Assembly: GCA_030704615.1 (NCBI GenBank)
Contig: CM060732.1
Location: forward strand, 57,722,001 to 57,786,000
DNA length: 64,000 bases
Source: Takakia lepidozioides
Taxonomy: Eukaryota > Plantae > Bryophyta
Reading direction: 5' to 3'
Part shown: piece by piece, positions 6,001 through 46,879 of the stretch
Numbering within the stretch: position 1 is the first letter of the stretch
How the letters are laid out: each line of letters opens with the position of its first letter
Notes under the pieces: model-generated
The model's database searches: none
Seen by the model: only the letters and a program-made list of their open reading frames with translations
Told to the model about the DNA's origin: nothing
Translations under genes and position numbers: made by a program

Positions 6001-9000
6001 GTTATCAACCCATATTGCAGATCCGTACTCCAAGGCAGGTCTAATAACGCGACAAAGCATGGTTTTCTTAACCTCAGAGTTGACCCCTCTGCAGTGGAAA
6101 AATTTCGTGAGCCCCAGAGCTTTGCCCTTGCCAGTTTGAACAACTTTCCGGATATGTGCATCCCAATTACAATTGGAGGAGAACTCAACGCCCAGGTAAG
6201 TGTAGGAAGGGAGGACCGGGATCTCTTGGCTACTCCACGGCCACTTAAGATCACTTCCTCCCTCTCCTCTGTCGTTGAATGCTACCACTGCACATTTGCT
6301 GACATTAGCCTCTAGCCCCCAAAGATCAAAGTATCTCTTCGCGCAATCAATCAACTCCTGGAGATTGGTTGGAGTCTCCCCTATGCCTGCGAAGTCATCC
6401 GCAAACATAAGGGCTGGTATGGTGGTATCACCCACCCTTAACCCAAATCCCTCACTTTCCACATCCTCGAGGAGTTGATTGATGAAAACATTGAAGAGCA
6501 GAGGGGAGAGATTGTACTCATAAGACTTTGTTTGCCGTAGCCTTGTGGCCATTGACCCCGCGCCCAGTTTGAGCGGGAACAAAAGGGACAGAACCTACCT
6601 CTGTTAGGGGCTGACATTGGTAGTAAGACTTACCTCCATATATAGAATTAATCCGGGTTTTCCAGATATCCTCTATAAATCCCTTCACACAAGCATCAAT
6701 CTGTTGTGTGTGATTTGCCCAAAAACTAGGCCTCAGGAGGGCCTGGGCTTTTGGCTCAGCCTCGAGACTTTCAAAGTTGGTAAACAGGGGTACAGGCACA
6801 ATTCCCTTGATAGATTTGAAGAGAGCGTCTCTTCGCTGAGAGAACCCCGGACAGTGTATCAGAAAATGAATACTGTCTTCAGATTGCCCACACAACGGGC
6901 AATTGCACTCTCCCGTTCCTCTCTGCTTCTGTTTGCTGTTCAAAGGTAGGCTTCCTGCCCTGAGTTTAAATTTCAGTCTAGTGCCGAGAGTGGGTAGACC
7001 CTTGAGGTCATCCAAGATGTCCTCCCCCATGTCACAGACTGGAAACAAGTTCAGGGAAGTTTTCTGCCTAACTTCATTTTCATCAGACAATCTCATGGCA
7101 ACAGACATGGCTGAGGACACTACAGCCTCTAAGTCAGATTTATCCAGCAGGATCAAGACTTGCGGATCCAGGTCCAGGTCCTTGAGGATCTCTTCTACTC
7201 TCTTCTGCCAGGACTTAGCCTGTTTGACAGGGCGGTCCTGTTTCCAAGATATACAGTCGATTAACTTAGGATATCTGGTGTTGGACATATGTTGCAGCTG
7301 ACCCCACCATCTGACCTTGAATTCATCTCGTCGGGAGCTTAAGGACGGAATGCCAAACTCACCCCGAACAGCCACATTGGCTGTTTTGGAGCATGCCGAC
7401 ATACACTCCTTAAGCACCCCCACTTGAATGGATTCTAGAGACTTAGCCTGGTTGAAGTTATCAACCCATATTGCAGATCCGTACTCCAAGGCAGGTCTAA
7501 TAACGCGACAAAGCATGGTTTTCTTAACCTCAGAGTTGACCCCTCTGCAGTGGAAAAATTTCGTGAGCCCCAGAGCTTTGCCCTTGCCAGTTTGAACAAC
7601 TTTCCGGATATGTGCATCCCAATTACAATTGGAGGAGAACTCAACGCCCAGGTAAGTGTAGGAAGGGAGGACCGGGATCTCTTGGCTACTCCACGGCCAC
7701 TTAAGATCACTTCCTCCCTCTCCTCTGTCGTTGAATGCTACCACTGCACATTTGCTGACATTAGCCTCTAGCCCCCAAAGATCAAAGTATCTCTTCGCGC
7801 AATCAATCAACTCCTGGAGATTGGTTGGAGTCTCCCCTATGCCTGCGAAGTCATCCGCAAACATAAGGGCTGGTATGGTGGTATCACCCACCCTTAACCC
7901 AAATCCCTCACTTTCCACATCCTCGAGGAGTTGATTGATGAAAACATTGAAGAGCAGAGGGGAGAGAGTACATCCTTGAGCTACACCTTGGTCTATGTCA
8001 AAGAAGTTGGACTTCTGTCCGTTAACAGTGACACAGCTTTTGGTGTGAGCATACAAGTTGTGGACAACTCTCCACATCTTTCCCTTGATCCCACAAGACC
8101 AGAGGCGGAACCATAGGCCATCTCTCCACACTGTGTCATAAGCCTTTTTGACATCCAGGAAAAAGACATAAGTGGGTTTCCCTTCTTTTTTCCTTCCTGG
8201 ATAATCTGGCTTAGAGTGAAGATATGATCCACACAGCCCCTGTTTCGCCGAAAGCCAGCTTGGCCTTCGTGGAAACAACCTCTAGACTCCAGATCAACCT
8301 CGAGACGAGTACTTATAACTCTGCAGAATGTCTTGCCAACAGCATTGAGGAGCGTGATGCCACGGTAGTTCCCCGGTTCTTCTCTGTCACCCTTCTTGTA
8401 TAGATTGACAATGACCCCCTGTCGCCAGCGAAAGGGGATCATTTCAGTCTTCCAGATAAGGTTAAAGAGGAGAACTAGGGCCTCTATCATGGGATCGCCA
8501 CCGTGCTTGATAAGCTCGTTGACAATACCATCAGGTCCACCAGCTTTATATCCATTTAAATGTTCAATTGCTTCCACAATCTCAGAAGAACTAATGGGAG
8601 CATTATAAGCCATTGAAATATACTCCAGTTCATCAGGGCTGTTTTGAATCATAGGAACAGTTTTTCCAACTGTGTCCCTCCATTCAGCAGAAGACCCCTC
8701 ACTGTTAGACCTAGAAGTTCTGCCAAGGATACTGTAGTGAGTTTCAAAGGTTTTGACAATGTCAACCGATGAAGTCACCACTGCACCTTTAGTAGTCTTC
8801 AACGCTTGTACTTGCTGACCGTTTTTCGGATTGTACAAACGCTGAAGGGCCAACCAGAATTTCTTGTCATTACCACCATGGCAGTTTGAGTTTATTTCAC
8901 TGTATAACTTGTCCCAGTATAATTTCTTCTGAGACCTAACAAGCTGATTGATATCTTTACGGAGCTGGTAGTACCTCGTCCACAATTCTCTGTTGGTTTC

Positions 9001-10957
9001 CAAATTGCAGCACTCTTTATAGAGGGCTCGTCTCTCAGCTATCTTGAGTTTAATCTCATTAGTCCACCAAATAACTGCTCTACCGCAGACAATTAGTTTC
9101 CTCCCAATGATCTTGTCAGCCACGGAGGAAACGAAACTCTCCCAAGAGTCCACTGCTCTTTCGTCTTCATTTCTTGCGTTAACAGAGCGTGACTGAAGTT
9201 CTTGGAGCGATTGGACAAAATGAGGGAGAGCCTCTTGCAAGGCCTGGACGTACTCAGCCTTGACCTCCTCATTGTGGAATTTTTCTATGCGCCACTTCCG
9301 AATCGAACGTTTCACAGATCTCTTGGTGGTGGGAAAACACTTTTTGATCTCAGTCCAAACCAGGAAGTGGTCAGAGGTACCAATATCAGTTCTGTCGATC
9401 AACACATTGGCACACTGGGGGAACAAAATTTTGTCCATTATGATATAGTCCACAATGGAATGTTCCCCAGTTTGGGATTTCTCACGAGTCCACTGCACTT
9501 GGTCACCTCTTGTCCTGTTATTCAAGGTCAAAAGCTGAAGCTCTTCTAGACAGTTAATTAACCGTCTGCCATTAGAATTCAGCTCGTCCTCACCAAAAGG
9601 TCCAATGATATCGTCCTGATGGATCCCTTTGCCCACCCGGGCATTGAAGTCCCCAATAGTACCACCTGACCTTTGGCAAGGAACGAAGCACAGTCCAGCT
9701 TTACATCTTCGAAGGCCTTGTCTGCGTCAGCACTAAGGGTCCCCTCTGTGGGCATGTAAACACAACCAACAAAGAGGTCCTTTGTACTCATGCCGCCCTT
9801 CAAATTCAGTTTTAGCCAGATACTATGCTCGTACCTCAAACCCTTGTTGATAATTTCACAATTGTCAAACAAGAAATCACGGACAAAGAATCCGACCCCT
9901 TTTTGACCGCGTTTGGCAGAGGCTACCTTGAGAGTACACATCTTACCTGCCCATTTATAACCAATGACATCTCCAACCAGTTTATCCGACGTTTCCCATG
10001 TTTCTTGCCCAGCACAGATATGAATATCATTAGTCCGAAGAACTTGTCCCACTTCAAGTTGTTTCCTTTGGTTGGTCAACCCTGAGAAGTTGAAAGTGGC
10101 CAGCCGCAAGCCAGCCCTTTGCGTGTGAATTGTTTGTCGTCTAGGTAGCTTGTGATTGCTCCTGGACGGCCAACCGTTCTGCAAAGGGGGGACAGTTACC
10201 CCATGTGTAGATTTTGCTCGTCTTGTGTAAACTTTGAGAATTGGTAAACCATTCAGGGTACCAAATCTTTCAGTTACACGACGCACAGGCTCCGCACACA
10301 TAGGGGCAGATTGTCCGTCAGACTGCTTGGGGACAATTACCCCGTGTATAGATTTTGCTCGTCTTGTGTAGACTTTGAGGATTGGTAAACCATTTAGAGT
10401 ACCAAATCCTTCAGGCTCTGCACACTTAGAGACAGATTGTCCATCTGACGGCTTGGGGACAATTACCCCGTGTATAGAATTTGTTCGTCTTGTGTAAACC
10501 TTGAGGATTGGTAAACCATTCAGAGTACCAAATCCTTCAGATTCAGGACGTTCAGGTTCCGTACAGTTAGGGGCATCTTGTCCTTCTGGCTGTTTGGATT
10601 CAACCTCATCCAGAGCGTCAAACCGATTAGAAACTCTCAAGTTGAAGTTGTTGCCCTTGGTTGTCTTCCTAGAGCGCCCCATTGAATCACCAATGTCTAA
10701 GACCGCTCTCCAGCCAGTCAAGGGACGAACTTCTTTGAGATTGAATTGATGCGGGACTCTATTAGAAGCACTTTTGGTCATTGCAACCTTCAACGTACCC
10801 CTGTTATCAAGTCTCGAGATGGTACCATTAGCCATGAAATCCAAGCCTGAGCTAGAGCATGTAGTTTTAAAGGACACATCGTCCATCCTGGGATTCACCC
10901 CAAAAACTACACATGAAGCCCTAGATTTGGCATAAGTAACCAATTCCCAGGGATCAC

Positions 10958-10998
<41 letters not shown>

Positions 10999-11895
10999 AT
11001 ACTCACAAGACGTTGTTTGCCATAGCCTTGTGGCCATTGACCCTGTGCCCAGTTTGAATGGAACCCATAGCAACAGAAACTACCTTGTCAGGGGACGCTG
11101 GTAGTATGACTTACCTTGAAACATACAATTGATCTGACTTTTCCAGATATCCTCTAGAAATCCCTTCACACAAACATCAATCTGCCGTGTGTGAATAACT
11201 AGACCCCAAAAGGGTCTGGGTTTTTGGCTCCGCCTCGAGATTTTCAAAGCTGGTAAACAGAGGTACAGGAACAAATCCCTTGATGGATTTGAAGAGGGCG
11301 TCTCTCTGGTGAGAGTACCCAGGACAATGAATCAGAAAGAGAGAGGGAGAGGGAGAGAGAGTGTGTGTGTGTTTGTGTGACTTTAAATATAATAGTGAAC
11401 ACATGCAAGGAAGACGATGTACTCATAAGACGACGTTTGACATAACCTTGTGGCCATTGACCCCGCGCTCAGTTCGAGCGGAACACAAAGGGACAGAAAC
11501 TACCTTTGTCAGGGGCTAACGCTTGACACATTCACACATTCAAGGAAGAGAGAGAATGTACTCATAAGACGTTGTTTGCTGTAGCCTTGTGGCATTGACC
11601 CCGTGGCCAGTTTGAGCGGAACACAAGGGACAGAAACTACCTTGTCAGGGGCTGACGCTGGTAGTATGACTTACCTTGGAACAGACAATTGATCCCAGTT
11701 TTCCAGATATCCTCTAGAAATCCCTTTACAAGCATCAATCTGCTGTGTGTGATTGCACAATGACTACGCCCCAAAAGGGCCTGGGCTTTTGGCTCAGCCG
11801 CGAAGAGGAAGAGAGAGAGAGAGAGAATGTACTCATAAGACGTTGTTTGCCGTAGCCTTGTGGCCATTGACCCCGCGCCCAGTTTGAGTGGGAGG

Positions 11896-13826: not shown

Positions 13827-15973
13827 TGTGTGTGTGTGTGTGACTTCAAATATAAGAGTGAACATATGACTGTGCATTGCAGGAAAGGAAGAGGGGCAGT
13901 GAGGTGCCATCAAGGAAGCACAACAAAAGAGAATCAAACAGAATTGGCATACAAGAGTTGGTCATGATGAGCCAAGGTGTGGCACTGGATACTGTGTCAA
14001 TGGCACCTGAGAGGCACGTGAGAGGAGGATTCCAAGTGCATGGAGATGGAACTCAGGAACCCATAACAGGTGCTGAAAGCAGAATAAGTCTGCTGGCTTC
14101 ACCACGGAGAGAAGCTGGCGAGAGAGAAGCCAGCCAATCAAGTAAAGGTTTGAAGAAAGAGAACTCTCATCATGAAGTACTGCAACAAAGAGGAAAGGAA
14201 ACTGCTGGGAAGCAGCAGCGATTTGGTCCGATTTACCGACCGCCAAGCGCTCGTGACTCAGTTGATGATAATGACTCCAACAAAGATTCTGAAGAGTTAA
14301 ACTCAAGTTTACAATATCTGACATTATCCACCAGGCAAGCCGATCCGCTACCTCCACCTGGTAGCCCCACTCCATTGTCACCTGCTCCAGCAGGTTTTTC
14401 ACAGTTCCGTGGGGGCCTGGCTGGTGGTCCTCGAGCAACAAAAGGTAGAGGTGGTGTCTCCCCAGTGATAAATACTATGCACAATGAGCGCCATGTTCAA
14501 TGGGTTGAGACACATGTGAAGGTGCCAACCCTCCCTTCTGAGAGCCTGGGTATAAAAGTCACTTTTGACACAGCAAATCAGGTCCGCCACATTGAGTACT
14601 CAGATCCAGCCACAATTGTAGTCACAGTCTCAGAGCGTGGACGAACATCCAGGGTTGTTAGTCATGGCGCTCCCGTGTTCGGTATAGGTACAGGTAGAAA
14701 CAACCAGCAGATGGATACCAATTTTGCGGAGAATCCAAGCACTCCAGTAGCAGGACTGTTTCACAAAGTTTTACCTTCAGGAGTTGCTGGAGATGTGCCT
14801 TCCGGGTTCCAGTTCAAGGCAACTCCAACTGCCTCACATATTGGCAATGGTGCAGGGATGGGGGGAAGAGGGATGAAGCCTGCAGGCACCGTGGATAGAA
14901 GCAAGGAGATAAGACCTACTGGAATTAAGAACCAGGATAGAGAACCTGGTATGGTGCCTTCAAGAGAAGGGAAAACACGCCCCTACGTGAAGTTAGGCCC
15001 TTCTGCTAAGGTGGAAAGGGGGACACTTGCAGAGGGGATGTCGAGTGTGAGAAGAGAGGCAGAGTTAATCAAAGGTGTGGAGAGGCTGCATGTGAATCCT
15101 AATGGTCAACGGAACGAACTCCCTTGGGTAGATCCCCCTGAGCTAGATGGAGTAAGAGGAGGGGTGGCCCTGAGACTGGTAGAAAATCGTCCCCCCCGGG
15201 TAGTGGTTGGGGAAAGAGGAGCTAATCCCATCACTGCTCATATAAAGTGGGGGGATGTGGAGGACTCTCCTGAGGTTCAGGAAAGCCTGCCTCACTGGAG
15301 AACTCCCCATAATGAGGGGAGGGGTTTAGTTTCTCATATTGCTGATGTTCTGGAGGCTACAAGTGGGTCGATTAGCCATGGCAGAAGCAAACCAAACATT
15401 GGGCAAGAGGTACAGGAGGACTCAGGTAGTCTCAAGGGCTCCTTTCACCCTGGCCCTATTAGAGGGCACCATAGCCCAGGGTCCTCAGGGCCTAGAAAGA
15501 GGGAGAGTCGGGACAGTAATCCCTGCCAGCCAGGCAAGGTACACTCAGAAGAGATCAACAACATTCCACAAGTGCCAATCCCCCTAGCTGCTGAGACACA
15601 TGTACGGAAGAGTGTCTGGGAAAGGCTTGGTCCCCAGATAGGGATAGGGAACTCTGTTCCCCGCGCTTCATCAGCTGTGGCTTGTCCCCCACTACGAACT
15701 TTTGATGCTGAGGTAGATCTGCCGAGAGATGGCAGCACTGGCTCCAGTGCCAAGGTTAGGGACGATACGAGGGGTTTCGACACAATGGTGCACAATGGCC
15801 TGGCACTTAAGGGCAGACGGCATGTGGCGGACTATGTGGAAGGGACTACTGCAGAAACAGATCTCTCTTTTAGTAATGGAGAAGACGGGGAAGGTTTAAC
15901 TAGCAAAGACATGAAACAGAAGCGTAGTAAAATGATGCTTTATGTGCCACGTCGTGGCTCTCATGGTCCTTGA
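3071..15973 (+). CDS. Uncharacterised, largely intrinsically disordered protein, ~1,221 aa, 4 coding exons
   Basis: Exons 3071-4249 (AAA|GTAAGT), 4528-4806 (CTGCAG|; ATT|GTAAGC), 5087-5203 (TGGCAG|; CAG|GTACAG) and 13883-15973 (TTGCAG|GAA..TGA). All three introns are phase 0 and the frame stays open. Intron 3 (5204-13882) holds the LINE array. A short helical/coiled-coil segment RIDLHHQFVREIVKIQQDRDQYEKQW spans exons 2-3. No recognisable domain. Confidence 0.7.
3098..3391 (+). repeat. In-frame tandem duplication, 2 x 147 bp (49 aa)
   Basis: GEEAAGVSGGRSGS[A/V]IEEPGVEGEKPE[G/C]DDAAGALAEEEMLGRKGKGDC occurs twice; units start near 3098 and 3245. Confidence 0.95.
5285..6510 (-). mobile_element. 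5'-truncated LINE copy (C-terminal half of RT) with degenerate 3'-end fragments
   Basis: 5415-6510 is nearly identical to 6865-7968 (LMFADD motif, C-terminal CPLC). Two degenerate 3'-end motifs lie at ~5285-5410. Confidence 0.9.
6511..10960 (-). mobile_element. Near full-length non-LTR retrotransposon (APE endonuclease + RT + C-terminal Cys/His motif), RTE-X-like
   Basis: APE motifs LATFN, QETW, GDFN and SDH. RT motifs FLDVKKAYDTVWRDGLW, QGCTLSPLLF and LMFADD. C-terminal CPLC..EDSIHFLIHC. A single ORF is broken by two 1-bp frameshifts (~9652, ~8197). The 5' end abuts (TC)n at 10960-10990. The clade assignment is from motif resemblance only. Confidence 0.9.
10190..10540 (-). repeat. Three ~120-129 bp repeats in the LINE N-terminal region
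   Basis: FGTLNGLPILKVYTRR(T/A)xSxHGVxVP is repeated three times in ORF 9579..11006. Confidence 0.9.
10995..12003 (-). mobile_element. Cluster of short LINE 3'-end copies separated by (GA)n/(GT)n tracts
   Basis: The terminal motif (plus strand TGTACTCATAAGAC..GCC.TAGCCTTGTGGCCATTGACCCC) recurs at ~11000, 11418, 11557 and 11827; the copy at 11981 keeps only the last ~20 bp. Confidence 0.9.
11898..11980. repeat. (GA)n microsatellite, ~41 units
   Basis: Seen directly. Other GA/GT tracts lie at 10960-10990, 11340-11380, 11810-11826 and 13798-13842. Confidence 0.97.
12004..12657. mobile_element. ~650-bp non-coding insertion with GGAACC/CCGG subterminal-type repeats (MITE or DNA-transposon remnant)
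   Basis: It interrupts the 3' end of the LINE copy at 12660-13796. Clustered ACCGGAACCG motifs occur at 12495-12630 around an AT-rich core. No clear TIRs were found. Confidence 0.45.
12660..13796 (-). mobile_element. 5'-truncated LINE copy
   Basis: Nearly identical to the 3' ~1.1 kb of the long copy. The 5' junction is at the (TC)n tract starting at 13798. Confidence 0.92.
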
Positions 15974-32413: not shown

Positions 32414-34940
32414 ATGTCAAACAGAAACCGGATGGCCGGCCCTCATGTGCTTAACGCACGGTCAGGTCCTCAGCCGGGTGGCATGCGTCCTGGCCCTGGA
32501 CCATATGGGCAACCAGTTCGGCCACAGATGGTTGGACAGCCACAAGTAATGCCCGGTGGTCCTCCTCCAGGAATGCTGGAGCAGAAGATCACCACCCAGC
32601 ACAATGAGATACAGAGGCTTTTGACCGAGAATCAGCGACTTGCTGCCACTCATGTCGCTCTTAGGCAGGAGCTGGCTGCTGCACAGCAAGAAATACAGAG
32701 GATGCAGGGATTGATTGCAGGTATCCAGTCGGAAAAGGATGGCCAAATCAGAGCTCTCTTGGACAAGTCGGCCAAATTGGAAGCTGATTTGCGGACAACT
32801 GAGCCTCTCAAATCAGAGCTTCACCAAGCACGCAATGATTGCCAAAAGCTGCATGTACATTCTCAAGAGCTTGCTCAGCAGGTCCGGACAATGACGCAGG
32901 AGCTGCAACGTTCGCGTGGGGAGATCCAGCAGGTTCCTTCTATGCGTTCAGAGATTGAAACCCTTCGACAGGAGCTTCAGCGCGCCAGGTTGTGTATCTG
33001 TCATGCGTCGATGATGCCAAGAGATAGAGAGATGATGCCAACTGAAGTTAGTGTGAATAAGAACCTCTTTACCATATGGGTACTGTCCCCTTTAGGGGGG
33101 ATGATAACAACAGCAAGTGCACTTGGAAATGTTCATTACATCTGCTTTGCAATAGACCTATGGAGAATATCTGACCTCTTCAATGTGCTTTCTGATGTGT
33201 TACTTGTGAAAGTTGTGTGAGCAGAAATGCCTTTGATTACGAGAAGAAGGCAAATGCTGAGCAGCTGGAGCAGAGACAGGCGATGGAAAAAAATCTTGTC
33301 ATTATGGCCAGAGATGTGGAGAAGCTTCGGGCAGAGCTTACAAATGCAGAGAAAAGAGCACAGCTAAATGCAGGTAAGCTGCTGCTATCAGTCAATTTGT
33401 CAGCTAAATGCAAGCTTAGACCAGTCCCAGGCTTTTAAGTCTCATCTCATACTTGTCTTGCGTGGAGATTGTCCACTATCAACGCACAGTGGACCACTGT
33501 ACTAAATCCAAGTACGGATTCTGTAGTCCCCATGCTTGAAATTAATTCAATAGAATCAATGCACCAAGTCCCCCCTGCATAGCACTTCCTGTGGCCACCT
33601 TAAACCAATTTGTAACCTGTGTATTATTAGAGTGTATCGCTATTCAATGCTGGTGCTTGGTCGAAGTGCCAAGTCCCTGCTGCATAGGGCTTCCTGTGGC
33701 TATGTAGAGCCAATTCATAACCTGCGTATTATTAGAACGCTCGCTGTTTGAGGCTTGCGCTTAGTCCCAATTCAGTGTAAGTATGTCTCTTTGTAAATTG
33801 TGACGAGGTTCTGAAGTCAGGATGAAATTGGGCTTCCTGCATAGGGCTTTTTGTGGCTATCTAGAACCAATTCATATCCTATGTATCAGTAGAATGCATC
33901 GCTGTTTGAGGCTTGTGCTTAGTCCCAATCCAGTGTAAGTATGTCTCTTTGTAAATTGCGATGAGGTTCTGAAGTCAAGATGGAATTGGCTGATATTGAT
34001 ACAATCCAATCTAGCTTCTTGTTAGTCTCTGCTTACAAATTGCATTTTACAAGTTCTTTTCTTGATGCAACTGATGCAACCTTTTAAGATGTATGTTTTG
34101 CAAAGGGCTTGCTGCGGCCCTCAAATGTGCAAGAGTAAAGATTTGAATGCTATGCATGTCACTTGACTATGGTGACTGTGCCTGTGGCTAATACCAGGAG
34201 TTTCAACATACAATGGGGGATATCCTGTCCCAGATGTCTCTTACAGCTCCATGCCTCAGCAGGTTTATGGGGATGGTTATGGCATGCATTCCCATGTAAG
34301 CTCTTCTCTGACATGAGAATTCTCCTCTGATCTCACAAAAATATATCGTCTGACATGGATGTGAGTTCTCTTATGTTGAAACGGTTTCTTTGTACAGAGA
34401 TCATTAGACTCCACTAAGGACATGTTAGCAGCTCGACCTGTGGACTTTGCTTTGAGCCCTGCTACAGGGAGACATCAGGGTTTGAGCTTTTTACCCGGGC
34501 ATGTGTATAAGTTTACATCTGCTCGGCTGACTCTATATCTTTCACCTGGCCTTCCTGTAGTACCAAGAATTAAAGTGTACGATTACTAAGTTTTGAAGTC
34601 CATGTGACCATGCTGGTTGCTGATAAAGGTAGGGTAGAGGCTGGGAGCTCACCAGTTGGGACCCATGTGAATCTGGGGTGGCTCTCCCATTTGTCAACGA
34701 ATATTTCTATGTTTCTTAGATACTGTAGCGGTCTTAGGTTTACAAATTACAGTACATTCCCCAATCGTAATTTTCAAGGTCAATGCTACATGTGTAAGGT
34801 CGCTCATAGGTGCCACGCTTGTTACCATTCAGATGCCGCTTGCTGTGGAGAATGGTGTGCCGTATTCAAATGGATCAACCCCGACCTGGGGAACTTATGA
34901 TATGCAACGTCATGTGGGAATACCTCACGGACGTAGATGA
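32414..34940 (+). CDS. FLX-like (FLC EXPRESSOR-like) coiled-coil protein, 309 aa (short isoform)
   Basis: Exons 32414-32988, 33225-33373, 34198-34295 and 34833-34940. Family motifs [70 protein letters not shown] and C-terminal [12 protein letters not shown] probable 5' UTR exon ends near 31095. Confidence 0.9.
33560..33990. repeat. Three diverged tandem repeats (~105-157 bp) in FLX intron 2
   Basis: CTGCATAG..CTT..TGTGGC...CCAATT..TA.CCT..GTAT recurs at ~33574, ~33679 and ~33836. Confidence 0.85.
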
Positions 34941-37900
34941 GCGGAGGACAGTCTTTGGGAGGAAATGCAGTCTGTTGTCATTTAGGTCATCTTGCAGCCT
35001 TACAATGCCAACATAGTGACTAGGTATTCCATCCTAGTTCTAGTTCTTTCTCCTACTGTCTGAGTGGTTACAAAGGTCTGTTCAGTTCCTCAGGAATTCA
35101 TAGGAAATCATGGTGGCAATGGTTGCAGCAGGTATGTAGTCCTACAAAGCATAGAGCTGACGTGCCATTTTAGGGGTTCCATATCTTCTGGTCCTAGGCG
35201 CTGTTTGTAGATGTCTTAGATGCCACAGTAGGCTGGTAGCTGTCTGCTCCAGCTGTAGCAACTCTGTTACAGAGCTGGTCGTGCAAATGGAGACATGCAG
35301 ATTCCTACTTCTCAAAGAGATGTGATCCTTGTATCGGTAGAGTACAGTGGGCTTAGCCAAAGCTGGCATGTAGGCTTATAAGTTTCTCATATCGTATGAA
35401 GTTCCGTGTTTGCCGTATTTGATTTGTACCATGAAGTCTCTGTCAAGACTTTATGAATGAGCTTGCGGGACCATATGTCTTCATGTCAAACATGACGATT
35501 CCCCGCCCGAGTGGTCGATGGCTGTTGGTCGTACCCACTTTTACTGAAGCTCAATAATGCTGGTGCACTCTGAGGGACCTACTTGTATCGTCCCAGTAGG
35601 TTTTGTGTCCATCCAGGCATGCAGTCTAACTACTGGGCCGGTTGAATATTTTGTTTCAAAAATATATGCGTAACTCTTTTCAGTTCTGTCTTTGTGCAAA
35701 AAGGAATCCTCAGATTTAGGGAGTGGAAGGAATTGGACTTTGTATGTCCCTTATTCTGTGAGCCTCTGATAGACTCTTTATTGTCCAGCTTCTAGAGAAG
35801 TCTTGAACTTTGTCCAAGGGTCAGACAAGTAGTTGGTTCACTGTGATTTGAATTTTGACTATGATGTAGTAGTATTACTACAGCTCCTTAAATCAAGTGC
35901 TCCGCTGAGTATTATTACTCTGAGCAATGGCACTTGTCTCACTTGGTCAGTCTGTTTGTTTGGCTGATCTAGGCTCTTGCAGTGTTAACATCTTTGAAGT
36001 TGTCATTCAACTTGGGGTAAAATCAGATTTTCTCCAAATTTTCATAGGTCACTTTTGTCAACGGGGATACATGCAAGTGGACGTACTGTGTTTATCTTCT
36101 GGCAAGGATGTAGTAAACTACTGCAGGATATTTATTCAAAACTTTCTTTTGTACAATTCACTTTTGATTAATGAGGTAACCTTGTATTAAACGAGTCCTC
36201 CACCTCTCATTGCTGGGAGGTAATGCAGAAGCCTAGATGTTAGCATCTGTTGTTGAGATACCATAAAGATTAGATGAAGTTTCTTCAAGTTCATCCTTGG
36301 CATGGGCTGTACTATGTAGACATTCTGAAGGCGGTGCTAGTGCAGTCAAGATGCACTCATTTTAGGAAATTTGAGGAGCATTGTGTACAACCTTTTTGAG
36401 TATGAGGACCAGTCTGAATTTAGTTTAAAAGCTGGAGAATTGTGTAGACGGTGTAGTTAGGTAGACGGTGCTTGCTAATCCTCGTCTCTTGTGGCTTCAT
36501 CAGTGACACATGTATAAGTCGTGACTGGAGTGCTGTGAAACAGTCCAAAAGCATATATGTAGTTAGCCAGGAAAGCTGTGAATGTCCAGGAAAGAACCAA
36601 AGCAATTGTCATTGTCTAATAGTGCATTGGAAGGAAGGAAGAATATTTGGATTTGTGGAGGAGAATGGAAGATGTATATGTATATATACATATATATGTC
36701 GAAATCTTTTCATGCAAGCTCTATTTTTCATTCTCCCGAGATAGTGGGCTGTCATCCTACTTAAGACTCCAGGAGTGCTCAGCTTGAGGCTTCTGAAGTA
36801 CCTCTTTCAGTACTATGGACAGATTTTCTACAAGGATGGCAGCTCTTTTGGACAAAGTTTTGCTGTATGGGAGAATAGACACTGAGATATACTTGAGATG
36901 CCTGGGGCTGAGGATCTCATTACCCAGCCCCCGCTCAATTTTGATGATGAGCATGGCTGCGCTGACCATGGATTGGGAGACTACAGCCAATCTATCTTGT
37001 GGTGTGGTGGTCAATTCCAGGAAGCTGGGGACTGGTTGGATGTGCTCCATATTCCCTGTTTTTCCATCTCTGCCTTCATCAAGGATTCTGCATAGAAAGA
37101 GTTGTTAAGGTTATTGTGCGTCAGAGGTTAACACATTCCCTCTACGGTACAATTAACTGCTGTCCTGCAGTCCCTTTAGGTTTTGATTTATTCCTAACTA
37201 CGCATCAACATTTGTTTTACACGGTTCACCAATGTTTCTTGTCTCGAGTTTGTTACATCCCGTGGTAAGTTAAAGACGATTTTAGATGTTTGTGCTGTAC
37301 TGATAGTCAGCGTAGTAAAACATGACAATCAATGTAGTGTCTTTGGAACCAATGATAAAAGGTTTACAGACTTGTCCATATCTGCGCAAGTAATGAGCTG
37401 TGAGAACCTTGTGACCAATGGACCTGAAAGACTTCAACTTCGATGGAGAGGTAAAGAAACGTATAATAAATTGTGCTTTAATTGAACTCCAATTTTTTCA
37501 AATTGAACTTCCATTGGAACGAATTTCCGTACCCTTTGGACATAGCCACTGCCATCTCGGACGCAGGCATAGTTTCAAGATTGTCCATCTCTGTTTTGGC
37601 AACGATTGCTCTAGCATATGGTGCTCATATCTGTGGTAGAGAAAGGAGAAAGGTTTTGTGGGCTTTTCACATTCTCTAACAATCCAAGGTATATCACAGC
37701 AAGTAAAGAGTATGTGAGAGCTGAGACACATACTCCTGAAGTGTTTATAAAGTCCCCAGGATCCTCAGGTTCTGTCTGCAGTTACTAGTCTGCAAGTTTT
37801 CTCCGCTCAGCAGCAATTGCAATCTTGCAGGTCAATATGTGTCTTAGCTGTGAGCATTGTGGCGTGTGTTACCACCGCCCGTCATGAGACAATAAGCCTT

Positions 37901-39542
37901 TCAATTCAGCTACCATTCTTATGATATAAGTATACTTCCAATTTCAGTTACTTCAGTCACATTTTTTTAGTATGCTACCTCTGGAGGGGTGTCAATTATT
38001 ATTGTTGGTCAATCATAAAGGACTTTTACAGAGCAAAGATCTGTGATCCCCACTACTTTTGGTGTAAATCTTCCGCATAGAATGATTACATTTGAGCAGA
38101 AAGACTCTGGTAGGTCAAATACCATCCTGGCATTATAAGGATGCATATTTTCTGGCGCAAAGTTGTGGTGCCATGCGATACTGAAGAAGCACGGGTGAAT
38201 GACGCTCCCAGTTGGCAAGTAAGTTCCTGCAACCTGCAGATGTGTTTGAGAAGAACCGAAAGATTGTAATTCCAGTGGCTCTTTGCTTGTGGCTGGAGTG
38301 ATGTTCGGACTCTTTCATCAGAATGCGGATGTGCCTTGAACTTGGCTCAGGCATGAGCACCTGCAAGCAAGTCCAGGAAGCATCCATCCTCTGAGGTAAC
38401 CTGAGAGGATGGCAAGTTGTAATCTTGGATTCTAAGTATCACCACAGGCAAGTTTTTGTTGACAATTCATCCCTTGAGCATAGGTCAGACAAGTAATTTT
38501 GGGGAGGAGATGGGTCTCAGATGGTCAACATGGTTCATTTTCTGGCCTGTTTATCAAGTTGTATAAAAACTGAGAGGGAATTTAGAAATACAGAGAAATA
38601 CAGAGACCCTGGCATCAGGCTCGGTCTTTTTGAGACTTAGAGCTGAGGCTTGTTCAGGCTAGAGGTCATGTGAAATTGCAACACTTTCCTTTTAGTCCAG
38701 ACAAAGGCAAAGTAATAATCAGATCCCAAACAGTTGCGTTTGAAAAGTTGATAATGGGAATGTTTGTATGGTAAACTCTGTTTTGTATGGCTTAGATTCT
38801 AGCCATTGGGAGTCCTTAGAGGAGCTTACCAGTTATATGCTGTGTTGTCTAATCTGTGCCTAGAGGAAACTGTAGCTGTGGTCTATCGTTGATAGTACTG
38901 TATAAGAGTCTGGGGCAGATCTCAACATGTTGTTTAATCTTGTTCGTTGGTCACTTGATACTTTCCTTAAGGTGGTTCACATATTGCTTTGAACATTTTG
39001 GGCAGCGATGATATGCGCAGTAGTTACTTCGTGTAAGTGCTGTACCCTTTTAGCTGGGTCATCACTGTCAAGTGGGGTGTATAGACCATCTTTATCCTGA
39101 ACTACTATGGGTTTAGTACTCGTGTAGATTGCTGTTAGATGAGCATATGAAAGTTAGCTTCTTCTTAGTGAGATGTTTGTCTTGTGATTGCTTGGTTCCA
39201 GCTGTCCCTGTCTGAGTGGTTTCTAACATTCTTTTCACTTTCTTGTCAGCTTAGGTGCACGTTGGGACAGGGCTTCTTGTAGATTGGATGTCACACATTC
39301 TCTGAGAAATTTTAACCTCTTGCCAGTTAGATCATTGGCATTGTAGTTGATGCACAATGAGATGATGGTGATGCCATTATGGTGTAGAAATACGGTACAA
39401 ACAGCTTCGTCTTCTTTCATGTACTTGGGTTGTTTCTTATGCCAGGTTATATCACCATCTATATGGACTCAGCTTTCTCCTTGTAGGTGGGAAACCGACT
39501 CACACATTCATAATGCACCACATCCTGCATGGGTTTGTGCAG

Positions 39543-42500
39543 GAAGCAACTCCAGTAGCCAATGGGCACCAACCTAGCACGAACCCAGCAGAGACTGACT
39601 TGAGTAAGTCAGCAGGAGAGCCTGCAAAATACTCGACTGGCCAAGATGGTAACATTTACCATGCTCCCACTGGGACTCACTTGCAAGATTCAAGCCTGTA
39701 CATGATGCCTGTTGATATCAAACCTTCAGAGGAGTGGACCACACATGAAGCTCCAAATGGCAAGCTATTCTACCACAATGTGTCGACAGGAACAACACAG
39801 TGGGAGAAACCGGCCTCCTTGGTTGTCAGTGAGTCTCAACAATATGCACAGGTGGCTCTTAAGTACCTCTTGATCTGTTCAATGTGATGATTCTCTAGCA
39901 GCTCCTTATTAGGCCATACTACTGTTTTTTCTGATTTCTGCATGTTATATCAAGTGAGAATCTTACATCGTGGATCTGCATTCATGTATGTTGTGACCGA
40001 TGCAAATATCAAGGAAGAGCAACAAGACTGTTGAGAAAATTTTGATGCTCACTGCCTATGTTGACATACCCAGCGTTTCGTATGCCAACCTGATTCTTAT
40101 TATTAGTTACATTTGGGACCTTATTTTGAGACATTCTGGTCAAGACATACATAAAAAATGTATCAAACTCTAGACTGATTGTGTGGCCCCATTCATATAT
40201 CATTGTGTAACACCTACTAGTCAAAGTATGTGTAATCACTCGTGTTTTCTTCTGTTGACAGGCTCAAATGCAACAGCTGTCTGTTCAAGCACAGGCAGTG
40301 CAGGCCAACCCAGGGCAAGTAATGCAGGGGGCGCAAGCTGCTAGTCCACAAGTCAACCAAGCTCAAATGCAGCAACACCCTCACACACCCCAGATGCCAT
40401 TGCAGCAGCAGGCTGGAGGACAAATGCCGCAAGTCTCAGCCCAGATCCAGCAACCGCAGCCAACTATGGCACAAATCCCACAACCTGTAGCTCAGACTCA
40501 GCAACCTGTAACACAAGGACATCTGGCAGGTGGACAGCACCCAGGAGCCTATATGACTCACCCTGGAGCACATATGCAGCATGCTGGTGTATATGTCCAG
40601 CATCCAGGAGTATATATGTCACACCCAGGAGCCTACATGCACCCTGGATCTCACCTGCAGCAACCTGGGGTATACATGCAGCACCCAGGAGGCCATATGC
40701 ATCAGGCAATTGCTCAAACACAGCCCTCTGTTGCACAAGTTCAGCAGCCTCCAACGATAGCACAAATGCAAACACCGGTTATGCAACCTCCTCTCCTCCA
40801 ACTTCAGGGACAAGCTCCCCAACCTGCATCAGCAGCCCAGCTGCCTCCCACCCCAATGACCTACACAATGCCTGGAATGATGCCACATCAAATGCCAGCT
40901 CAGATGCAGCATGTGGCACAGCAGTCGCAGCTACCTCCGTTAATGCCACCCCCTGTGGGGCAGCAACCTATGCAGCCATCTGCCCAATCCCAACCCTCTC
41001 AACCTCCAGTGGCTCCTAGACCTGGGGCTTACCCTGCTCCCACAACACAGCAGAGGAACTCCCAGCAATCTCAGGGCCCATCCCGCGCACCAGCACAGGT
41101 CTCTCCATCGTCACAATCGCAGTCACAGTCGCAATCCCAAGTGCCGTCTTCCCAGCCACCGCATACTCCCCATGGTATAAGTTTTTGACTTACCTCATGA
41201 ATGTTCTTCAACTTATGCAACTTATGCAATTAAAAAACTATTATTCCAGTGTCATTATTTGTTTCCCATCGTTTTGAGTCTTTATTGCCAAGTATTTATT
41301 TCACATCTCATGGGTCCATTAGCTGTATTTCTTCATGTTGTTCTGTTACACTACATCTTTATTGCTTTCTCTCTCTTCTCTCCTCTCTCTCTCCAAACCT
41401 CGGTGGATGCGGGAGTTCCTGTGGGGTCAATGGCCATAAGGCTTTGGCAAGCCTCGCAGGGAACGGCATAAGTACATTCTCTTCTCCCACATACGCACAG
41501 CTTATCTGCATGAGGTAGTTTGTATTTGGTTGACATTTGGTGTATAATGTAGGATTTATCTTGTTCTTCAATGGCCCTGGGAGGCTTGGGTGGACATCCT
41601 TTCTGCCTTCTGTGTCCTATGACCCATAGTAAATCCATTTTTCTCCTTTTCCTTCTCTGTTTTTCTTCAGACCCCTCTGGATGTTATGAAAGTTCTTTTT
41701 ATTAACTTTCTTTTGCTCTTTTATAAAGTACCATTGCATTTCATTTTATTCTTCTTTCTCCTCTGTCCCAATGGCCCTCTGGTGCTCCTGTATTATGTTC
41801 TGTCTTGTTCTTCTCTCTTATAGGTATTTAGGACTTCTTTTTCTAGTTGTACATGGTAGTGCTGAATGCCAGCTGCCTGTTGGTTTGATGCAAAAGGCCC
41901 TTGTTGTAACATGTATCTAGGGTTCTAAATATAAATCTGGCTGGTCGGTTGTTGTAACAGTGTCTGCGCCTCCTGTGATACATCCAAGACCACAAGTTTC
42001 TGAGACAGCCACTCCTGTAAAATCAGCCCCTCCACCTCCTCCCACTGCAACCACTGGACCTCAAGGTGACTAGATGTATCCTATCTTGCAAGTTCACTGA
42101 GTGAGATAGAGGGTAGTAGGGCCAGTAGAATGTTACCTCAAATTGAAGTTAGGTCTTTAGTCCGTACTTATATGGGGTGGTTATGGTACCAGGAACAAAT
42201 GGAGGATTAGATGTTACTGATTCTCCAATGTTGGACGTTGATTTCTTTAATCCGTAGAGGTTACATGGACTGTTGATAACTCTACATTAGTGTGCTGCTG
42301 GTTTCTTTGCTCCCTTGGTGTGATTAAGTTTGTGTCCAAGCAGACTGCGGTTATCTCTCAACTGTGAGTTTTAAGTTAGCAGGCTCTCGCAAGATATAAC
42401 AGACATTGCAAAGCTTGATTATCTTTCGTCATGAGAAAATTGTGTTTATGTGAGCACATTATAAATAATGAGCTTGATTGAAGAGAGATCAGTTTGATGC

Positions 42501-45500
42501 TGTTTGCGACTGTTTGCTGAGTGAATATCTTGTGGTGGCTTATGGGGGTATTTGATAGGTGCCAATCTGTTCGTGTTCGGCATTCCTGAAGATATGGGTG
42601 ACAAGAAACTGGCAGAGTTGTTTGCTCCCTATGGCTCAGTTGTTTATGCCAAGGTTGGGGTGGAGAAAGATACAGGTCGCAATCGAACTTATGGTATGAG
42701 ATCTTTGGTCGAAAGCCTAATTTCTTTGATTAATATTGAACTTAATTCACATCTTCCAGGGTCAGAGATAGTTCCTGGGCCTCCACGTGGATATCATTGA
42801 TACCTACCTGTAGTAAAATCTAAAATTGCTTTGCTATGTGTTGTGTTTCATCCTTTTGAATGAAGAAAGTAGGTGTTCTACCCGGAATGCTTATCATTCT
42901 CCACCAACAGTCTCTCGCTCTGCTTCGTTCACATAGTGATGAAGTTGCCCAGCGTGTAGATTCATTTTGTGCTTCCCTAGTGAGTTCTGTTTCCTTCTAG
43001 ATGAGGGAACATACTTCAGGGACTTGGTGATCATATGCATGACAGGAAAGTAAAGTTCCTGAGTGTCAGAGCAATATTTCGTTGTAAAATGCCCGTATCC
43101 CCAGGTCTTGTAAGAACTAAACCTGGTCTTGAGGACACATGTCTCAAATGTAGGTGTTTGGCCTACAGTAAAGTGGCCCTAGCTTCCAGCAGTCAATGGT
43201 GAAGGCTAGTGGGCCCATATTGTAGATGTCAAAATTCACTGGTGACATATGTTCGAGCAATAGGTTCATACAGAGCTGTGGTTAACGCATCAGCTTGCCA
43301 AAGTGGATATCTAGGGAATTGAGTATGTGGAGGATTATGGTTAAGAAAGTGCCCGGTTGGCTTTTCATTGTGATGTTGGAAAGTGTGCACCTCCTGATAG
43401 AATGCAATAGCCCTGACTGATAGAAGTTGTTCTGACCTGCATCTTTATAGTAGCAAGGATTCTTGATCATCACTCAAAAACCACCAGTTTACTACAGTTG
43501 CTCGAAATTAACAAAATCTTCTTAAGCTATCAACAAGTTTGATTAGTAACGGAAGTTGGCCAGGGTTGATTGAGGGAGGCTTTAATAACTTGCATAGGTG
43601 CACAAGCAATTCTTCACCAATGCTTTTACAAGGTGTTAATGTGTAGTTTGTTAACCTGCCATTCTATCGTGTGATTGTCAAGGATATCACTACTTTGCCC
43701 TGCCTGTGCATGATAAAATCATCCTTGAAGTGGTATAGATTGCCTGCACTAGAGGGTCATTTGTTTATGTTAATGAGGACTTGGACTTAGTTTCCTAAAA
43801 GTTAGTGGTATCCTTGAGGCTGGCAGCACCCACTGTGGCCCATCGTTATAGATGTTTAGTACTGCAGCTTCAGGTAGTGACTTGGAGTTCCTCTTTGGTG
43901 GCTGATATTAAATCCATCAAATCTATTGAAGGAGTATACAGGGGAGAAAGGCACATGGAATAAGATTTGTAACACAACCCATGATTGTCTGGAATGATTA
44001 GTACCACTGATTATGCTTTATGTATGACTATGTGCTGTGGGTCTTGGTTCCATAGTTGATGGTCCTTAATAGAGGATCCGTATGTAATAAAAATATAAAA
44101 GGCGTATAGTCCAGGAATCATGATAGCAAGGATGAGAACATACTCCTAAAGCAGTGGTGGGACATGAAGCTCTGGAACATTGATGGCAGCTGCCATCCAA
44201 GAGTACCTTCCTCTTGTTCAGGGACGTTTTACAAATAATCCTTCTGTGACTATCTGGAAATACGAGGATCTTTTGTTGGACTGGCTAGCAATATCTGCAT
44301 GGCATAGTGCTGGATATACATCCATGAAGTCCTGATGGGATTTTGATGGCAGCTGCCATGCAACATTATTCAGGGATATGTGATTAGAAACCTTTTGGCT
44401 ATCTGCAAAGATCAGGGCTTGAGAAATCATGCTCAGACAAATGAGTGACTGGAGGCGTTGATTGTGTTACCTTGTGAAAACAGGTGATAGCAGTCTACTT
44501 GTAGTAGCCGGTGGGATCAGAATGTGGTTTACATGTAGAGTGTCACTACAGATGTTACTACGTTTGTTGGGTGGAAGCTGGTCAACGTCTGGGATGTAGC
44601 AGTGGTTTCATCTTGACAAACCATGCACAGGTGAAAATGCACAGACAAGAGGGTCTGGAGGCAGTGATTGTGTTACCTTGTGAACAAAGGTGATAGCAGT
44701 CTACTTGTAGTAGCCGGTGGAATTCGAATGTGGTTTACATGGAGAGTGTTACTCCACATTTTACTACATTTGATGAGTGAAATCTGGTCAATGTCTTGGA
44801 TGTAGCTGTGGTTTCATCTTGACAAACCATGCACAGGTGAAAATGCATGGACAAGAGTGTCCGGAGGCAGTGATTGTGTTACCTTGTGAACAAAGGTGAT
44901 AGCAGTCTACTTGTAGTAGCCGGTGGAATTAGAATGTGGGTACATGTAGAGTGTTACTTCACATTTTACTACATTTGATGAGTGAAATCTGGTCAATGTC
45001 TTGGATGTAGCAGTGGTTTCATCTTGACAAGCTATGCACAGGTGAAAATGCACAGACAAGAGTGTCTGGAGGCAGTGATTGTGTTACCTTGTAATCAAAG
45101 GTGATAGCAGTCTACTTTAGTAGCCGGTGGAATTAGAATGTGGTTTACATGTAGAGTGTTACTCCACATTTTACTACATTTGATGAGTGAAATCTGGTCA
45201 ATGTCTGGGATGTAGCAGTGGTTTCATTTTTGTCGCTTCTTTGATGTTCTTGGCATGCATGTTGCTAGTGAACTCTGTCTCAAGTAGAGGAGGCTCTTTA
45301 TGTTGCTTCCTTGGTCCCTACCTCATATTTAGATAGACCTGCATAAACGTGGTCACCAAAACCTGTTTGCACAACTCTTAGAAGTATGTGGCCATAAAGC
45401 TGAAGGCCCCTGGTGAGGATACCGGAACCATCAGTAGTAATTGTCCACATGCTGTGGGGATGCACAGGGCCTTGGACAGGTGGGTAGTGTCCGGTGGTCA

Positions 45501-46879
45501 TCAAACCATTGTCTCTATCTGCATTTAGAAAATAGTTTACAATGTCATTTCTCCAATTATTGCTTCATGTGTAGTGAAGTTGTTCTCCACTTGACAGGAA
45601 ACACTTATTTGTTTTTTAGGGTCAGAATAGCACATGGAACAGTCTTAATCCATTGATTGGGGAGAAAGGAAGTGTTAGTGGGAAAGGGTATATGAGAGAA
45701 CTTGACAAGAAGAGAGCTTAAAGGGTCTCTTCTTGACTTGTACTTCCTTAGTATGATGGATGTGCTCTGGTGCTGGAATCAGTAGCAGGTCCTCAATTTG
45801 TTATTTAGGTTATCTTTTCTGACCTGCTCTTCAGATCAGAGTAATATTAACCTCTGGGGTGCTGGACTAAGGAGTGGCCCCCTAGTGGACTGTTACGTTC
45901 GGTTTGTCCAAGCACTCTGTATGGTCACATTGCTGGCATCTTTGGTAAGATGGGACTGGCTACATCTTAGTGTTGCTTATTTTAGGGGGGAACGTATGAT
46001 TATAGTAGTGGAAGAGAACTAGAATTCCAGGGGTATTTTAAAGTGATGGTGGTGCTGCAGCTCTTGAATATCCCCTTATGAAGTTACATTTTACTTCAGT
46101 GTTAAAGAATGCTCACACGGGCAGGATCCCGACAGCCCTAAACAAGCCTGTAGGGTTAGTCAACATGATGTCTCCTAGCAATAGTAAAACCTGTTCCTTT
46201 GTTGCAAGTATCACATCTTCCTTAAATTGCTGCACAGTACACAATTGTGGAAATCACTGCTAAATGCTCATCTCTTTAAGTAACTAGTCTCTTGGACAAG
46301 AACATGCTATCAGGCTTAGCTTTCAAGGACTTCATCAGAGGTGAAGAAGACAGGTTGTACCCAAAAGTTGCTGTGATTGACTTATTAGTGAACAAATTAT
46401 ATGGGATGGTAGTGTTTCTATACGAACAGTCCAAACTGGTATCAAATATATATTTCTTGGGATAGAGAGGCATGCCATGTTTTATGGCACACTAGTGAAT
46501 CAAATCTTTCCCTTGTATTGTACATTACTGTAAGTGAGATAGCTGCCACCCCCTTCTCTTTCTACCCATCTCATTTAGTCTTGTTCGTGTGCCATCTGGA
46601 ATCACATTTGTATCTGGGTCCGGGGGACACCTTCCTCAAGCAGGTTTTGTGTCCATGGATTCATCACAAGCTGCAGAAGCAGCTATTCACCAAGTGAATG
46701 GTATGTCTCTCTCTGGCAAACGCATCAAAGTGGAGTTGAAGAGGGGAGACACAGAGGGCCAAGGCCAGCATCAGCAGCAACAACAACAATCTCAACAACA
46801 GCAAACACCATCTGGGGGGGTTGGTCCCACTAGATGGCATCACAACCATAATGCAAATTCAGGCTATCGGCCTTACTAG
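39543..46879 (+). CDS. WW domain + Q/P/H-rich prion-like region + CELF/Bruno-type C-terminal RRM (565 aa); probably the distal exons of a long FLX-like isoform
   Basis: Exons 39543-39851, 40262-41174, 41961-42065, 42559-42693 and 46644-46879 have consistent phases (0,1,1,1). WW: WTTHEAPNGKLFYHNVSTGTTQWEKP. RRM: GPQGANLFVFGIPEDMGD..LAELFAPYG.V..AKV..EK.TGRNRTYGFVSMDS..AA..AI..VNG..L.GKRIKVELKR. Confidence 0.82.
41365..41490 (+). mobile_element. Short LINE-tail-related insertion in a TC-rich tract
   Basis: GGGGTCAATGGCCATAAGGCT (41423-41443) and a terminal AGTACATTCTC match the LINE 3' end. It is preceded by a TC-rich tract. Confidence 0.55.
44451..45228. repeat. Intronic tandem repeat, ~206-bp unit x ~3.8
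   Basis: Units start GGAGGC..TGATTGTGTTACCTTGT at 44451, 44657, 44863 and 45068. Confidence 0.95.

Follow-up and report, generated by a model that had tools for sequence, protein, structure and literature searches.

Does a single gene of the moss Takakia lepidozioides encode both an ordinary coiled-coil protein of the FLX family and a much longer protein, in which the same coiled coil is joined to a WW domain, a low-complexity region and an RNA recognition motif (RRM)? The question is raised by a locus at positions 32414-46879 of a 64,000-nucleotide stretch of genomic DNA (assembly GCA_030704615.1, contig CM060732.1, positions 57,722,001 to 57,786,000 of the forward strand), hereafter called the window, to which all coordinates below refer. 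An initial annotation, made from the letters of this stretch, had described the locus as a fusion of FLL2-like and FCA-like modules switched by an alternative last exon. The analysis reported here makes it highly probable that the locus forms a single transcription unit whose two 3' ends exclude each other, yielding either a 309 amino-acid (aa) FLX-like protein or an 839-aa protein of FLX-WW-Q/P-RRM composition, Q/P being a glutamine- and proline-rich region.

The source stretch was read through and the exon model recomputed: the nine exons, their phases and their splice borders all agree, to the base, with those of the initial annotation. All nine lie on the plus strand. Exon 1 of the FLX part (e1, 32414-32988) holds the ATG, a Pro/Gly-rich N-terminus and the main coiled coil, in 191 codons plus 2 nt. 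The coiled coil continues in exon 2 (e2, 33225-33373), and exon 3 (e3, 34198-34295) ends in phase 0 (CAT|GTAAGC) at the branch point of both isoforms. The proximal route leads to the terminal exon e4 (34833-35686), which provides 35 codons and a stop (34833-34940, the stop itself at 34938-34940) followed by the 3' untranslated region (UTR). The product is 309 aa long, and canonical AG/GT dinucleotides are found at all FLX exon borders from e1 to e4. In the distal route, the interval 34296-39542, which holds e4 and its putative poly(A) region, is spliced out as a single 5247-nt intron, and e3 meets an acceptor (ttgtgcag|GAA) that opens the WW exon (39543-39851; 309 nt, 103 codons, phase 0 to 0). 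Then come a Q/P/A/M/H-rich low-complexity exon (40262-41174, 304 codons, with matches to P0271 and P0272), a short Pro-rich linker exon with a conserved VSAPPxIHxRP motif (41961-42065), an exon carrying the first half of the RRM (42559-42693; RNP2 present, exon end falling within RNP1, Pfam RRM_1 at 6.5e-7) and an exon carrying its second half (46644-46879, Pfam RRM_1), which goes on with a Q-rich tail and a conserved GPTRW...RPY C-terminus up to the stop TAG at 46877-46879. Exons e1-e3 and the five tail exons sum to 2520 nt, or 839 aa. The phase-0 donor at 34295 with its 309-aa route through 34833-34940, as well as the phase-0 acceptor at 39543 with five further exons and about 839 aa, are therefore recovered exactly as first proposed. 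In the database searches described below, the exons were searched singly or database proteins served as queries; the joined 839-aa model was never used as such.

Are both routes used? Parts of the stretch are represented in two public runs of the same organism, which come from separate studies, and their contigs were placed on positions 34050-39950 (5901 letters). These contigs follow the exons and the 3' region of e4 and omit the introns, depth being zero across the flanking intron parts. They behave as RNA, since exons are covered and introns skipped. In both runs, the donor at 34295 is joined to e4 (34295^34833, GT..AG, contig depth 27.3 and 22.5) and to the WW exon (34295^39543, GT..AG, skipping 5247 letters, depth 9.9 and 57.9). 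One donor is hence connected to two alternative exons, each path ending with its own stop, as expected of alternative last exons. Contigs spanning 34295^39543, the first check suggested by the initial annotation, are thus present in both runs, and the choice that it had postulated, of a nearby last exon or a more distant tail of five exons, is visible as two joints in RNA-type contigs, in a layout that is kept in other bryophytes. A match of phases alone would occur by chance in one case out of three; the fusion joint goes beyond chance because the exact GT..AG joint recurs in both runs, each belonging to a different study. The predominance of the short or long form swaps between the runs, which hints at regulation. 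Other joints of the model are seen as well: a loose end before 34195 reads the end of exon 2 (e2-e3 joint), a loose end behind 39852 matches the opening letters of the exon at 40262 (WW to Q/P joint), and an RNA contig extends upstream of e3 toward exon 1. The short-form contigs span 34833-35686 and 34833-35641, contigs being unable to show true 3' ends.

The same arrangement is found in other bryophytes. Genomic contigs of relatives were reached via the WW exon, in a search dominated by multi-WW proteins and from which four single-exon fragments were useful. In a related moss (L002), FLX exons e1-e4 are followed by the WW, Q/P, linker and first RRM-half exons, in window order. In a second contig (L005), e1-e4 precede the WW exon (which in P0213 extends into Q/P sequence) and the two halves of the RRM, again in window order. 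L005 is of hornwort origin, as shown by the 78% identity between its WW-Q/P exon and a protein of Nothoceros aenigmaticus. In both loci, e3 is followed by a donor in phase 0, e4 is conserved together with its stop, and the acceptor reads cag|GAA. Exon e2 is kept in these two loci and in L006 and L007, and the first RRM-half exon is 84-95% identical in L002, L004, L005 and L007. Within the 5.2-kb interval skipped by the long form, e4 is the sole long block conserved at the DNA level, as compared with L001/L002 and L005. One further match in this interval, 38215-38246 against L001/L002 (26-34 nt, 85-92%), could be a chance similarity or a regulatory element.

Transcripts and gene models extend this picture. 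One metatranscriptome contig of 3.6 kb (L007), derived from a Sphagnum-like moss, starts with e1 and the ATG, retains intron 1 and goes on with e2 and e3, the latter being joined by splicing to the WW exon and then to the Q/P, linker and first RRM-half exons; its protein cluster has 82 members. P0001 represents the short e1-e4 form from a source very similar to this moss. Complete fused open reading frames (ORFs) encode 771 aa (P0281), 734 aa (P0274) and 703 aa (P0277). P0274 is collinear with all eight long-form exons of the window, the Q/P exon included. In P0277, the ATG is preceded by stops in the same frame; fern and lycophyte proteins are marginally the closer ones to its FLX part, while a placement with bryophytes is not rejected (approximately unbiased test, p = 0.33). 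In Ceratodon purpureus, the model KC19_4G227100 (KAG0581129.1, 747 aa; UniProt A0A8T0IDX9) is a complete FLX-WW-Q/P-RRM-...RPY protein; together with M758_4G230200, it is publicly annotated as 'hypothetical protein' or 'WW domain-containing protein'. Two features set Ceratodon apart from the window. First, e4 is missing and an e3-like sequence is continuous with the WW exon in a single exon, as read from the model protein and from the related contig L006, in which e3-like sequence and WW exon are a single exon with nothing between them; to judge from these two sequences, the Ceratodon fusion would be constitutive. Second, Ceratodon has a separate short FLX gene, KC19_11G015800, on another chromosome, whereas in the window both products come from one gene. 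The FLX+WW+RRM architecture, which the initial annotation had suggested looking for in other proteomes, is therefore present in mosses (Ceratodon, the Sphagnum-like source and L002) and in hornwort L005. The arrangement is evidently old, being shared by mosses and a hornwort, and one moss lineage has hard-wired the fusion by intron loss. To note, the Sphagnum balticum model CAM6011492.1 (P0273) joins FLX exons 1-3 to WW and Q/P fragments and then to a CCT-motif region, and seems to be a chimera in which the fusion gene has been mis-spliced to an adjacent one.

Could the WW-RRM exons belong to something else? The alternative that survives best, although decidedly unlikely, is that both routes operate, the fusion isoform being accompanied by a stand-alone WW-Q/P-RRM protein made from an internal promoter and starting at ATG 39513 or at an ATG within the WW exon. 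ATG 39513 is indeed in frame, and a similar ATG lies upstream of the acceptor in L002 (P0128). However, no contig of either run falls on 39369-39542, where the bin depth corresponds to exactly 23 exonic bases; because the contigs do not reach this segment, the ATG is unsupported as a start exon, and it was rejected as an independent start. The hornwort locus has, moreover, an in-frame stop 12 nt upstream of its WW acceptor. Low-depth contigs (2-7) do occur in the skipped interval, at 35807-36082, 36778-36940, 37074-37229, 37518-37757 and 37775-37948, and such signal at 35.8-37.9 kb would suit an internal promoter; these weak contigs are either intron remnants or derived from elsewhere. The piece at 37148-37229 has loose ends on both sides that continue into sequence absent from the window, and is probably a dispersed repeat transcribed elsewhere or another locus. 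A hidden 5' exon among the low-depth contigs at 36.8-37.9 kb was rejected on the same ground, their loose ends not being found in the window.

A second alternative, very unlikely and already disfavoured, sees here two independent neighbouring genes, 34295^39543 being occasional read-through splicing (a 'conjoined gene') devoid of a function of its own. Conjoined transcripts are common in eukaryotes, the genes would be in tandem on the same strand with a complete FLX gene upstream, and the hornwort transcripts P0278 and P0280 begin within the WW exon. Such splicing noise accounts poorly for a phase-0/phase-0 junction kept from mosses to hornwort, for complete fused mRNA-like ORFs in other taxa, one lineage having fused the exons in its DNA, or for the lack of contigs on the bases just upstream of 39543; in run X2, the fusion path is even the deeper one (57.9 vs 22.5), with the caveat that contig depth is a poor measure. 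Finally, that 34295^39543 is an assembly artefact, a chimeric k-mer path, is extremely improbable: each contig has only 30 exon-3 letters on the short side of the joint, the WW-exon contig opening with the final 30 letters of exon 3, but this is how a k=31 graph represents any real branch, the joint is exact, GT..AG and in frame in both runs, each of a different study, it is found again in spliced transcripts of orthologues taken from independent data sets, and the X2 exon-3 contig has a depth (78.9) near the sum of the two branches (57.9 + 22.5), a fit that is suggestive only, contig depth being a poor measure.

A single transcription unit with two 3' ends hence remains the preferred reading, and several points weigh against it. 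The RNA support consists of de Bruijn contigs from runs that are only guessed to be RNA; a contig spanning two genes demonstrates no single transcript, a caveat of the tool itself, and no single molecule reaching from e1 to the last exon has been seen in this organism. The functional statements made below all derive from domain content. The Nothoceros ORFs P0278 and P0280, which start inside the WW exon, would fit an internal promoter. Besides, no WW-RRM sequence was found within 10 kb downstream of FLX at one liverwort locus (Calypogeia) and one lycophyte locus (Diphasiastrum), one paralogue being covered in each.

What is the FLX module? A search with exon 1 (191 aa) returned 171 matches, with E-values from 1e-75 to 1e-30 among the matches listed, many of them named FLX-like 1-4 and ranging from mosses to angiosperms, ferns included. 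In a tree, the window sequence falls within a supported bryophyte FLX clade (95/94), its closest relative being that of Sphagnum balticum (85% identity across the coiled-coil part). The rows of FLL2 and FLL4 make up a seed-plant clade of their own and the bryophyte clade branches elsewhere, with weak deep nodes (42/6); the window protein does not group with seed-plant FLL2 apart from FLL1 and FLL4. The name 'FLL2-like' given initially was too narrow, as the tree shows no specific tie to FLL2 and the e4 C-terminus resembles an FLL1-type tail. The FLX part is thus best placed at the level of the family. The C-terminus encoded by e3 and e4, YGDGYG...WGAYDMQR...RR, is common to FLX-like proteins of lycophyte, fern, Ginkgo, Cryptomeria (a conifer) and Amborella. 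Because FLX proteins of land plants canonically end in a C-terminus of the e4 type, the short product is predicted to be a canonical FLX protein. With the Arabidopsis proteins FLX and FLX-LIKE (FLL1-4), the e1-e4 product of the window shares the coiled-coil core and this C-terminus; unlike any one of them, the window gene is co-orthologous to the family and not to FLL2 alone. To note, the FLX-like gene of the liverwort Calypogeia fissa (L008, 10001-10915) is one uninterrupted, intronless ORF, whereas moss, hornwort and lycophyte genes have 4-5 exons, and may be a retrocopy.

The distal tail assembles a WW domain, a low-complexity region and one RRM. The WW exon scores 5.6e-10 with Pfam WW; when the orthologue P0274 is used as query, the nearest WW domains of solved structure are those of PRP40A, WBP4 and TCERG1. 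The Q/P exon contains 24% Q and 17% P, with three Arg and zero Asp, Glu and Lys (manual count of the translation). It harbors seven tandem heptads HPG[AVG][YH][MV]x (HPGxYMx type) at about 40538-40700, and Tandem Repeats Finder (TRF) reports periods of 21 nt and 81 nt. Related tyrosine repeats are kept in the Sphagnum-like, P0281 and Ceratodon proteins. Apart from these heptads, the conserved elements of the tail are an LPPLMP-type motif, the HTPH|VSAPPxIHxRP segment and the C-terminal GPTRW...(Y/F/H)RPY (window 46830-46876), the latter kept in P0281, P0284 and P0277. The ...RPY end presumably recalls the C-terminal PY-type nuclear import signal of FUS. For the RRM, the best matches of P0274 among single-domain solved structures are RRM3 of CELF1 (2cpz, 8e-26) and RRM3 of CELF2 (2my7, 5m8i), and the early assignment to a CELF/Bruno-type RRM3 stands. 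The initial annotation had seen no N-terminal RRM exons between 35000 and 39500. A stop-to-stop ORF scan and a relaxed tblastn of the window agree, as no further WW or RRM coding piece was found in 35-39.5 kb or in the whole 64 kb; the full-length orthologues likewise have a single C-terminal RRM_1 and no N-terminal RRMs. Missing N-terminal RRM exons, whether in 35-39.5 kb or upstream of FLX, were rejected on these three grounds.

The intron that splits the RRM (42694-46643) presents a peculiarity of its own. In three other taxa, namely the Sphagnum-like moss (L007), Nothoceros (P0278/P0280) and Ceratodon (the 662-aa isoforms, P0276), transcripts or gene models run on into this intron, and each product has half an RRM and lacks the ...RPY end. 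The WW-path contig of run X2 measures 1492 nt, exactly 30+309+913+105+135, and the graph therefore branches at the 42693 donor in the window too. This suggests a second regulated 3' choice at that donor.

How does this tail relate to known RNA-binding proteins? FCA possesses two N-terminal RRMs, no C-terminal RRM, plus a WW domain with a prion-like domain on either side; it binds FY, and needs the coiled-coil protein FLL2 to form condensates (PMC11962161). The window tail may resemble it in that a WW domain adjoins Q/P-rich, prion-like sequence and is combined with RRM-type RNA binding. It differs by the absence of N-terminal RRMs and by its one C-terminal RRM of CELF-RRM3 type. The WW domain is followed by the 304-aa Q/P-rich region and preceded by about 60 unremarkable residues, FCA being compared here by description only. 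FCA was not found among the matches of the WW-exon search, which include PRP40/TCERG1-type WW-FF proteins and one protein with an RRM and two WW domains. FCA families are the nearest language-model clusters, with a score of 0.80 that provides a lead only. The initial label 'FCA-like' is hence not established, the WW domain being of PRP40/WBP4/TCERG1 type and the two N-terminal RRMs absent. Because it has no N-terminal RRMs and carries a C-terminal one, the tail is judged not to be an FCA orthologue, and would be FCA-like solely in its set of parts. CELF/Bruno-like proteins share with the tail an RRM closest to RRM3 and its C-terminal position; they differ in having three RRMs instead of one and in lacking the WW domain as well as the FLX coiled coil. 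The FET family (FUS/EWS/TAF15) offers a likeness of general design, namely a tyrosine-repeat low-complexity region, an RRM and an ...RPY end. In contrast to FET proteins, the window protein has neither RGG boxes nor a zinc finger, its domains are of another order and origin, and sequence homology does not extend past the RRM fold.

The single transcription unit would work as follows. When donor 34295 is spliced to e4 at 34833 and the transcript ends near 35.65 kb, the 309-aa canonical FLX-like protein would be made; alternatively, when e4 and its 3' end are skipped, 34295 would be joined to 39543 and five more exons would lead to the 839-aa form. The choice may result from the e4 acceptor, used together with its proximal poly(A) site, competing against the acceptor at 39543. 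The FCA gene also involves a proximal versus distal choice of 3' end inside the gene, and the window gene is alike in this respect; an autoregulation of the choice in the manner of FCA is possible by analogy. From its domains, the long form may serve in the nucleus as a multivalent scaffold that binds RNA. It would oligomerise through the coiled coil, contact proline-rich partners through the WW domain, self-associate weakly through the low-complexity region and hold RNA through the RRM. As the coiled coil is common to both isoforms, the short one could enter assemblies of the long one and adjust the valency of the latter. In its composition, the long form seems reminiscent of the separate Arabidopsis proteins FLL2 and FCA.

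A bolder proposal, tentative and on balance rather unlikely, is that the bryophyte, possibly the land-plant, ancestor had a single gene giving FLX and FLX-WW-prion-like-RRM products by intronic polyadenylation, the long product acting as a one-polypeptide condensate of FLL2+FCA type that feeds back on its own poly(A) choice. If true, such an ancestral dual-product gene would be a natural Rosetta stone for why FLX-family coiled coils and RNA-binding proteins with WW and prion-like domains cooperate. In Arabidopsis, FLL2 (coiled coil) and FCA (WW/prion-like) are separate proteins that must meet for 3'-processing condensates to form. Here, an FLX-family gene itself appears to encode a WW, prion-like and RRM extension as an alternative product, in a design that would predate the moss-hornwort split.

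The literature searched on FLX-like/FLL2 proteins in conjunction with WW, RRM, fusion, moss or Marchantia yielded no description of the FLX-WW-prion-like-RRM architecture, nor of a WW, prion-like or RRM extension on a described FLX-family protein. The locus appears to be a gene of the FLX family in which a WW-prion-like-RRM tail of ancient origin is put to alternative use, and whose fused proteins were previously public as uncharacterised gene models: the 'hypothetical protein' models of mosses would hide an undescribed branch of the FLX family. The long form would represent a natural covalent coiled-coil/low-complexity RNA-binding module, the built-in short isoform being a possible tuner. Moss models (Ceratodon, possibly Physcomitrium and Sphagnum) would make the coupling of valency, RNA binding and poly(A)-site choice tractable.

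Some minor features of the window complete this description. Two tandem repeats lie in introns of the gene: a 158-bp unit present twice (88% matches) within FLX intron 2, at 33680-33989, and a 206-bp unit present 3.9 times (92% matches) in the large intron that splits the RRM, at 44429-45227. Upstream of the FLX gene, a long ORF on the minus strand (6521-8281) has a reverse-transcriptase domain (RVT_1, 1.4e-24); near it are found long ORFs with no Pfam match, at 7996-11087 on the minus strand and 13862-15970 on the plus strand. The RVT_1 ORF and its neighbours are probably a retroelement.

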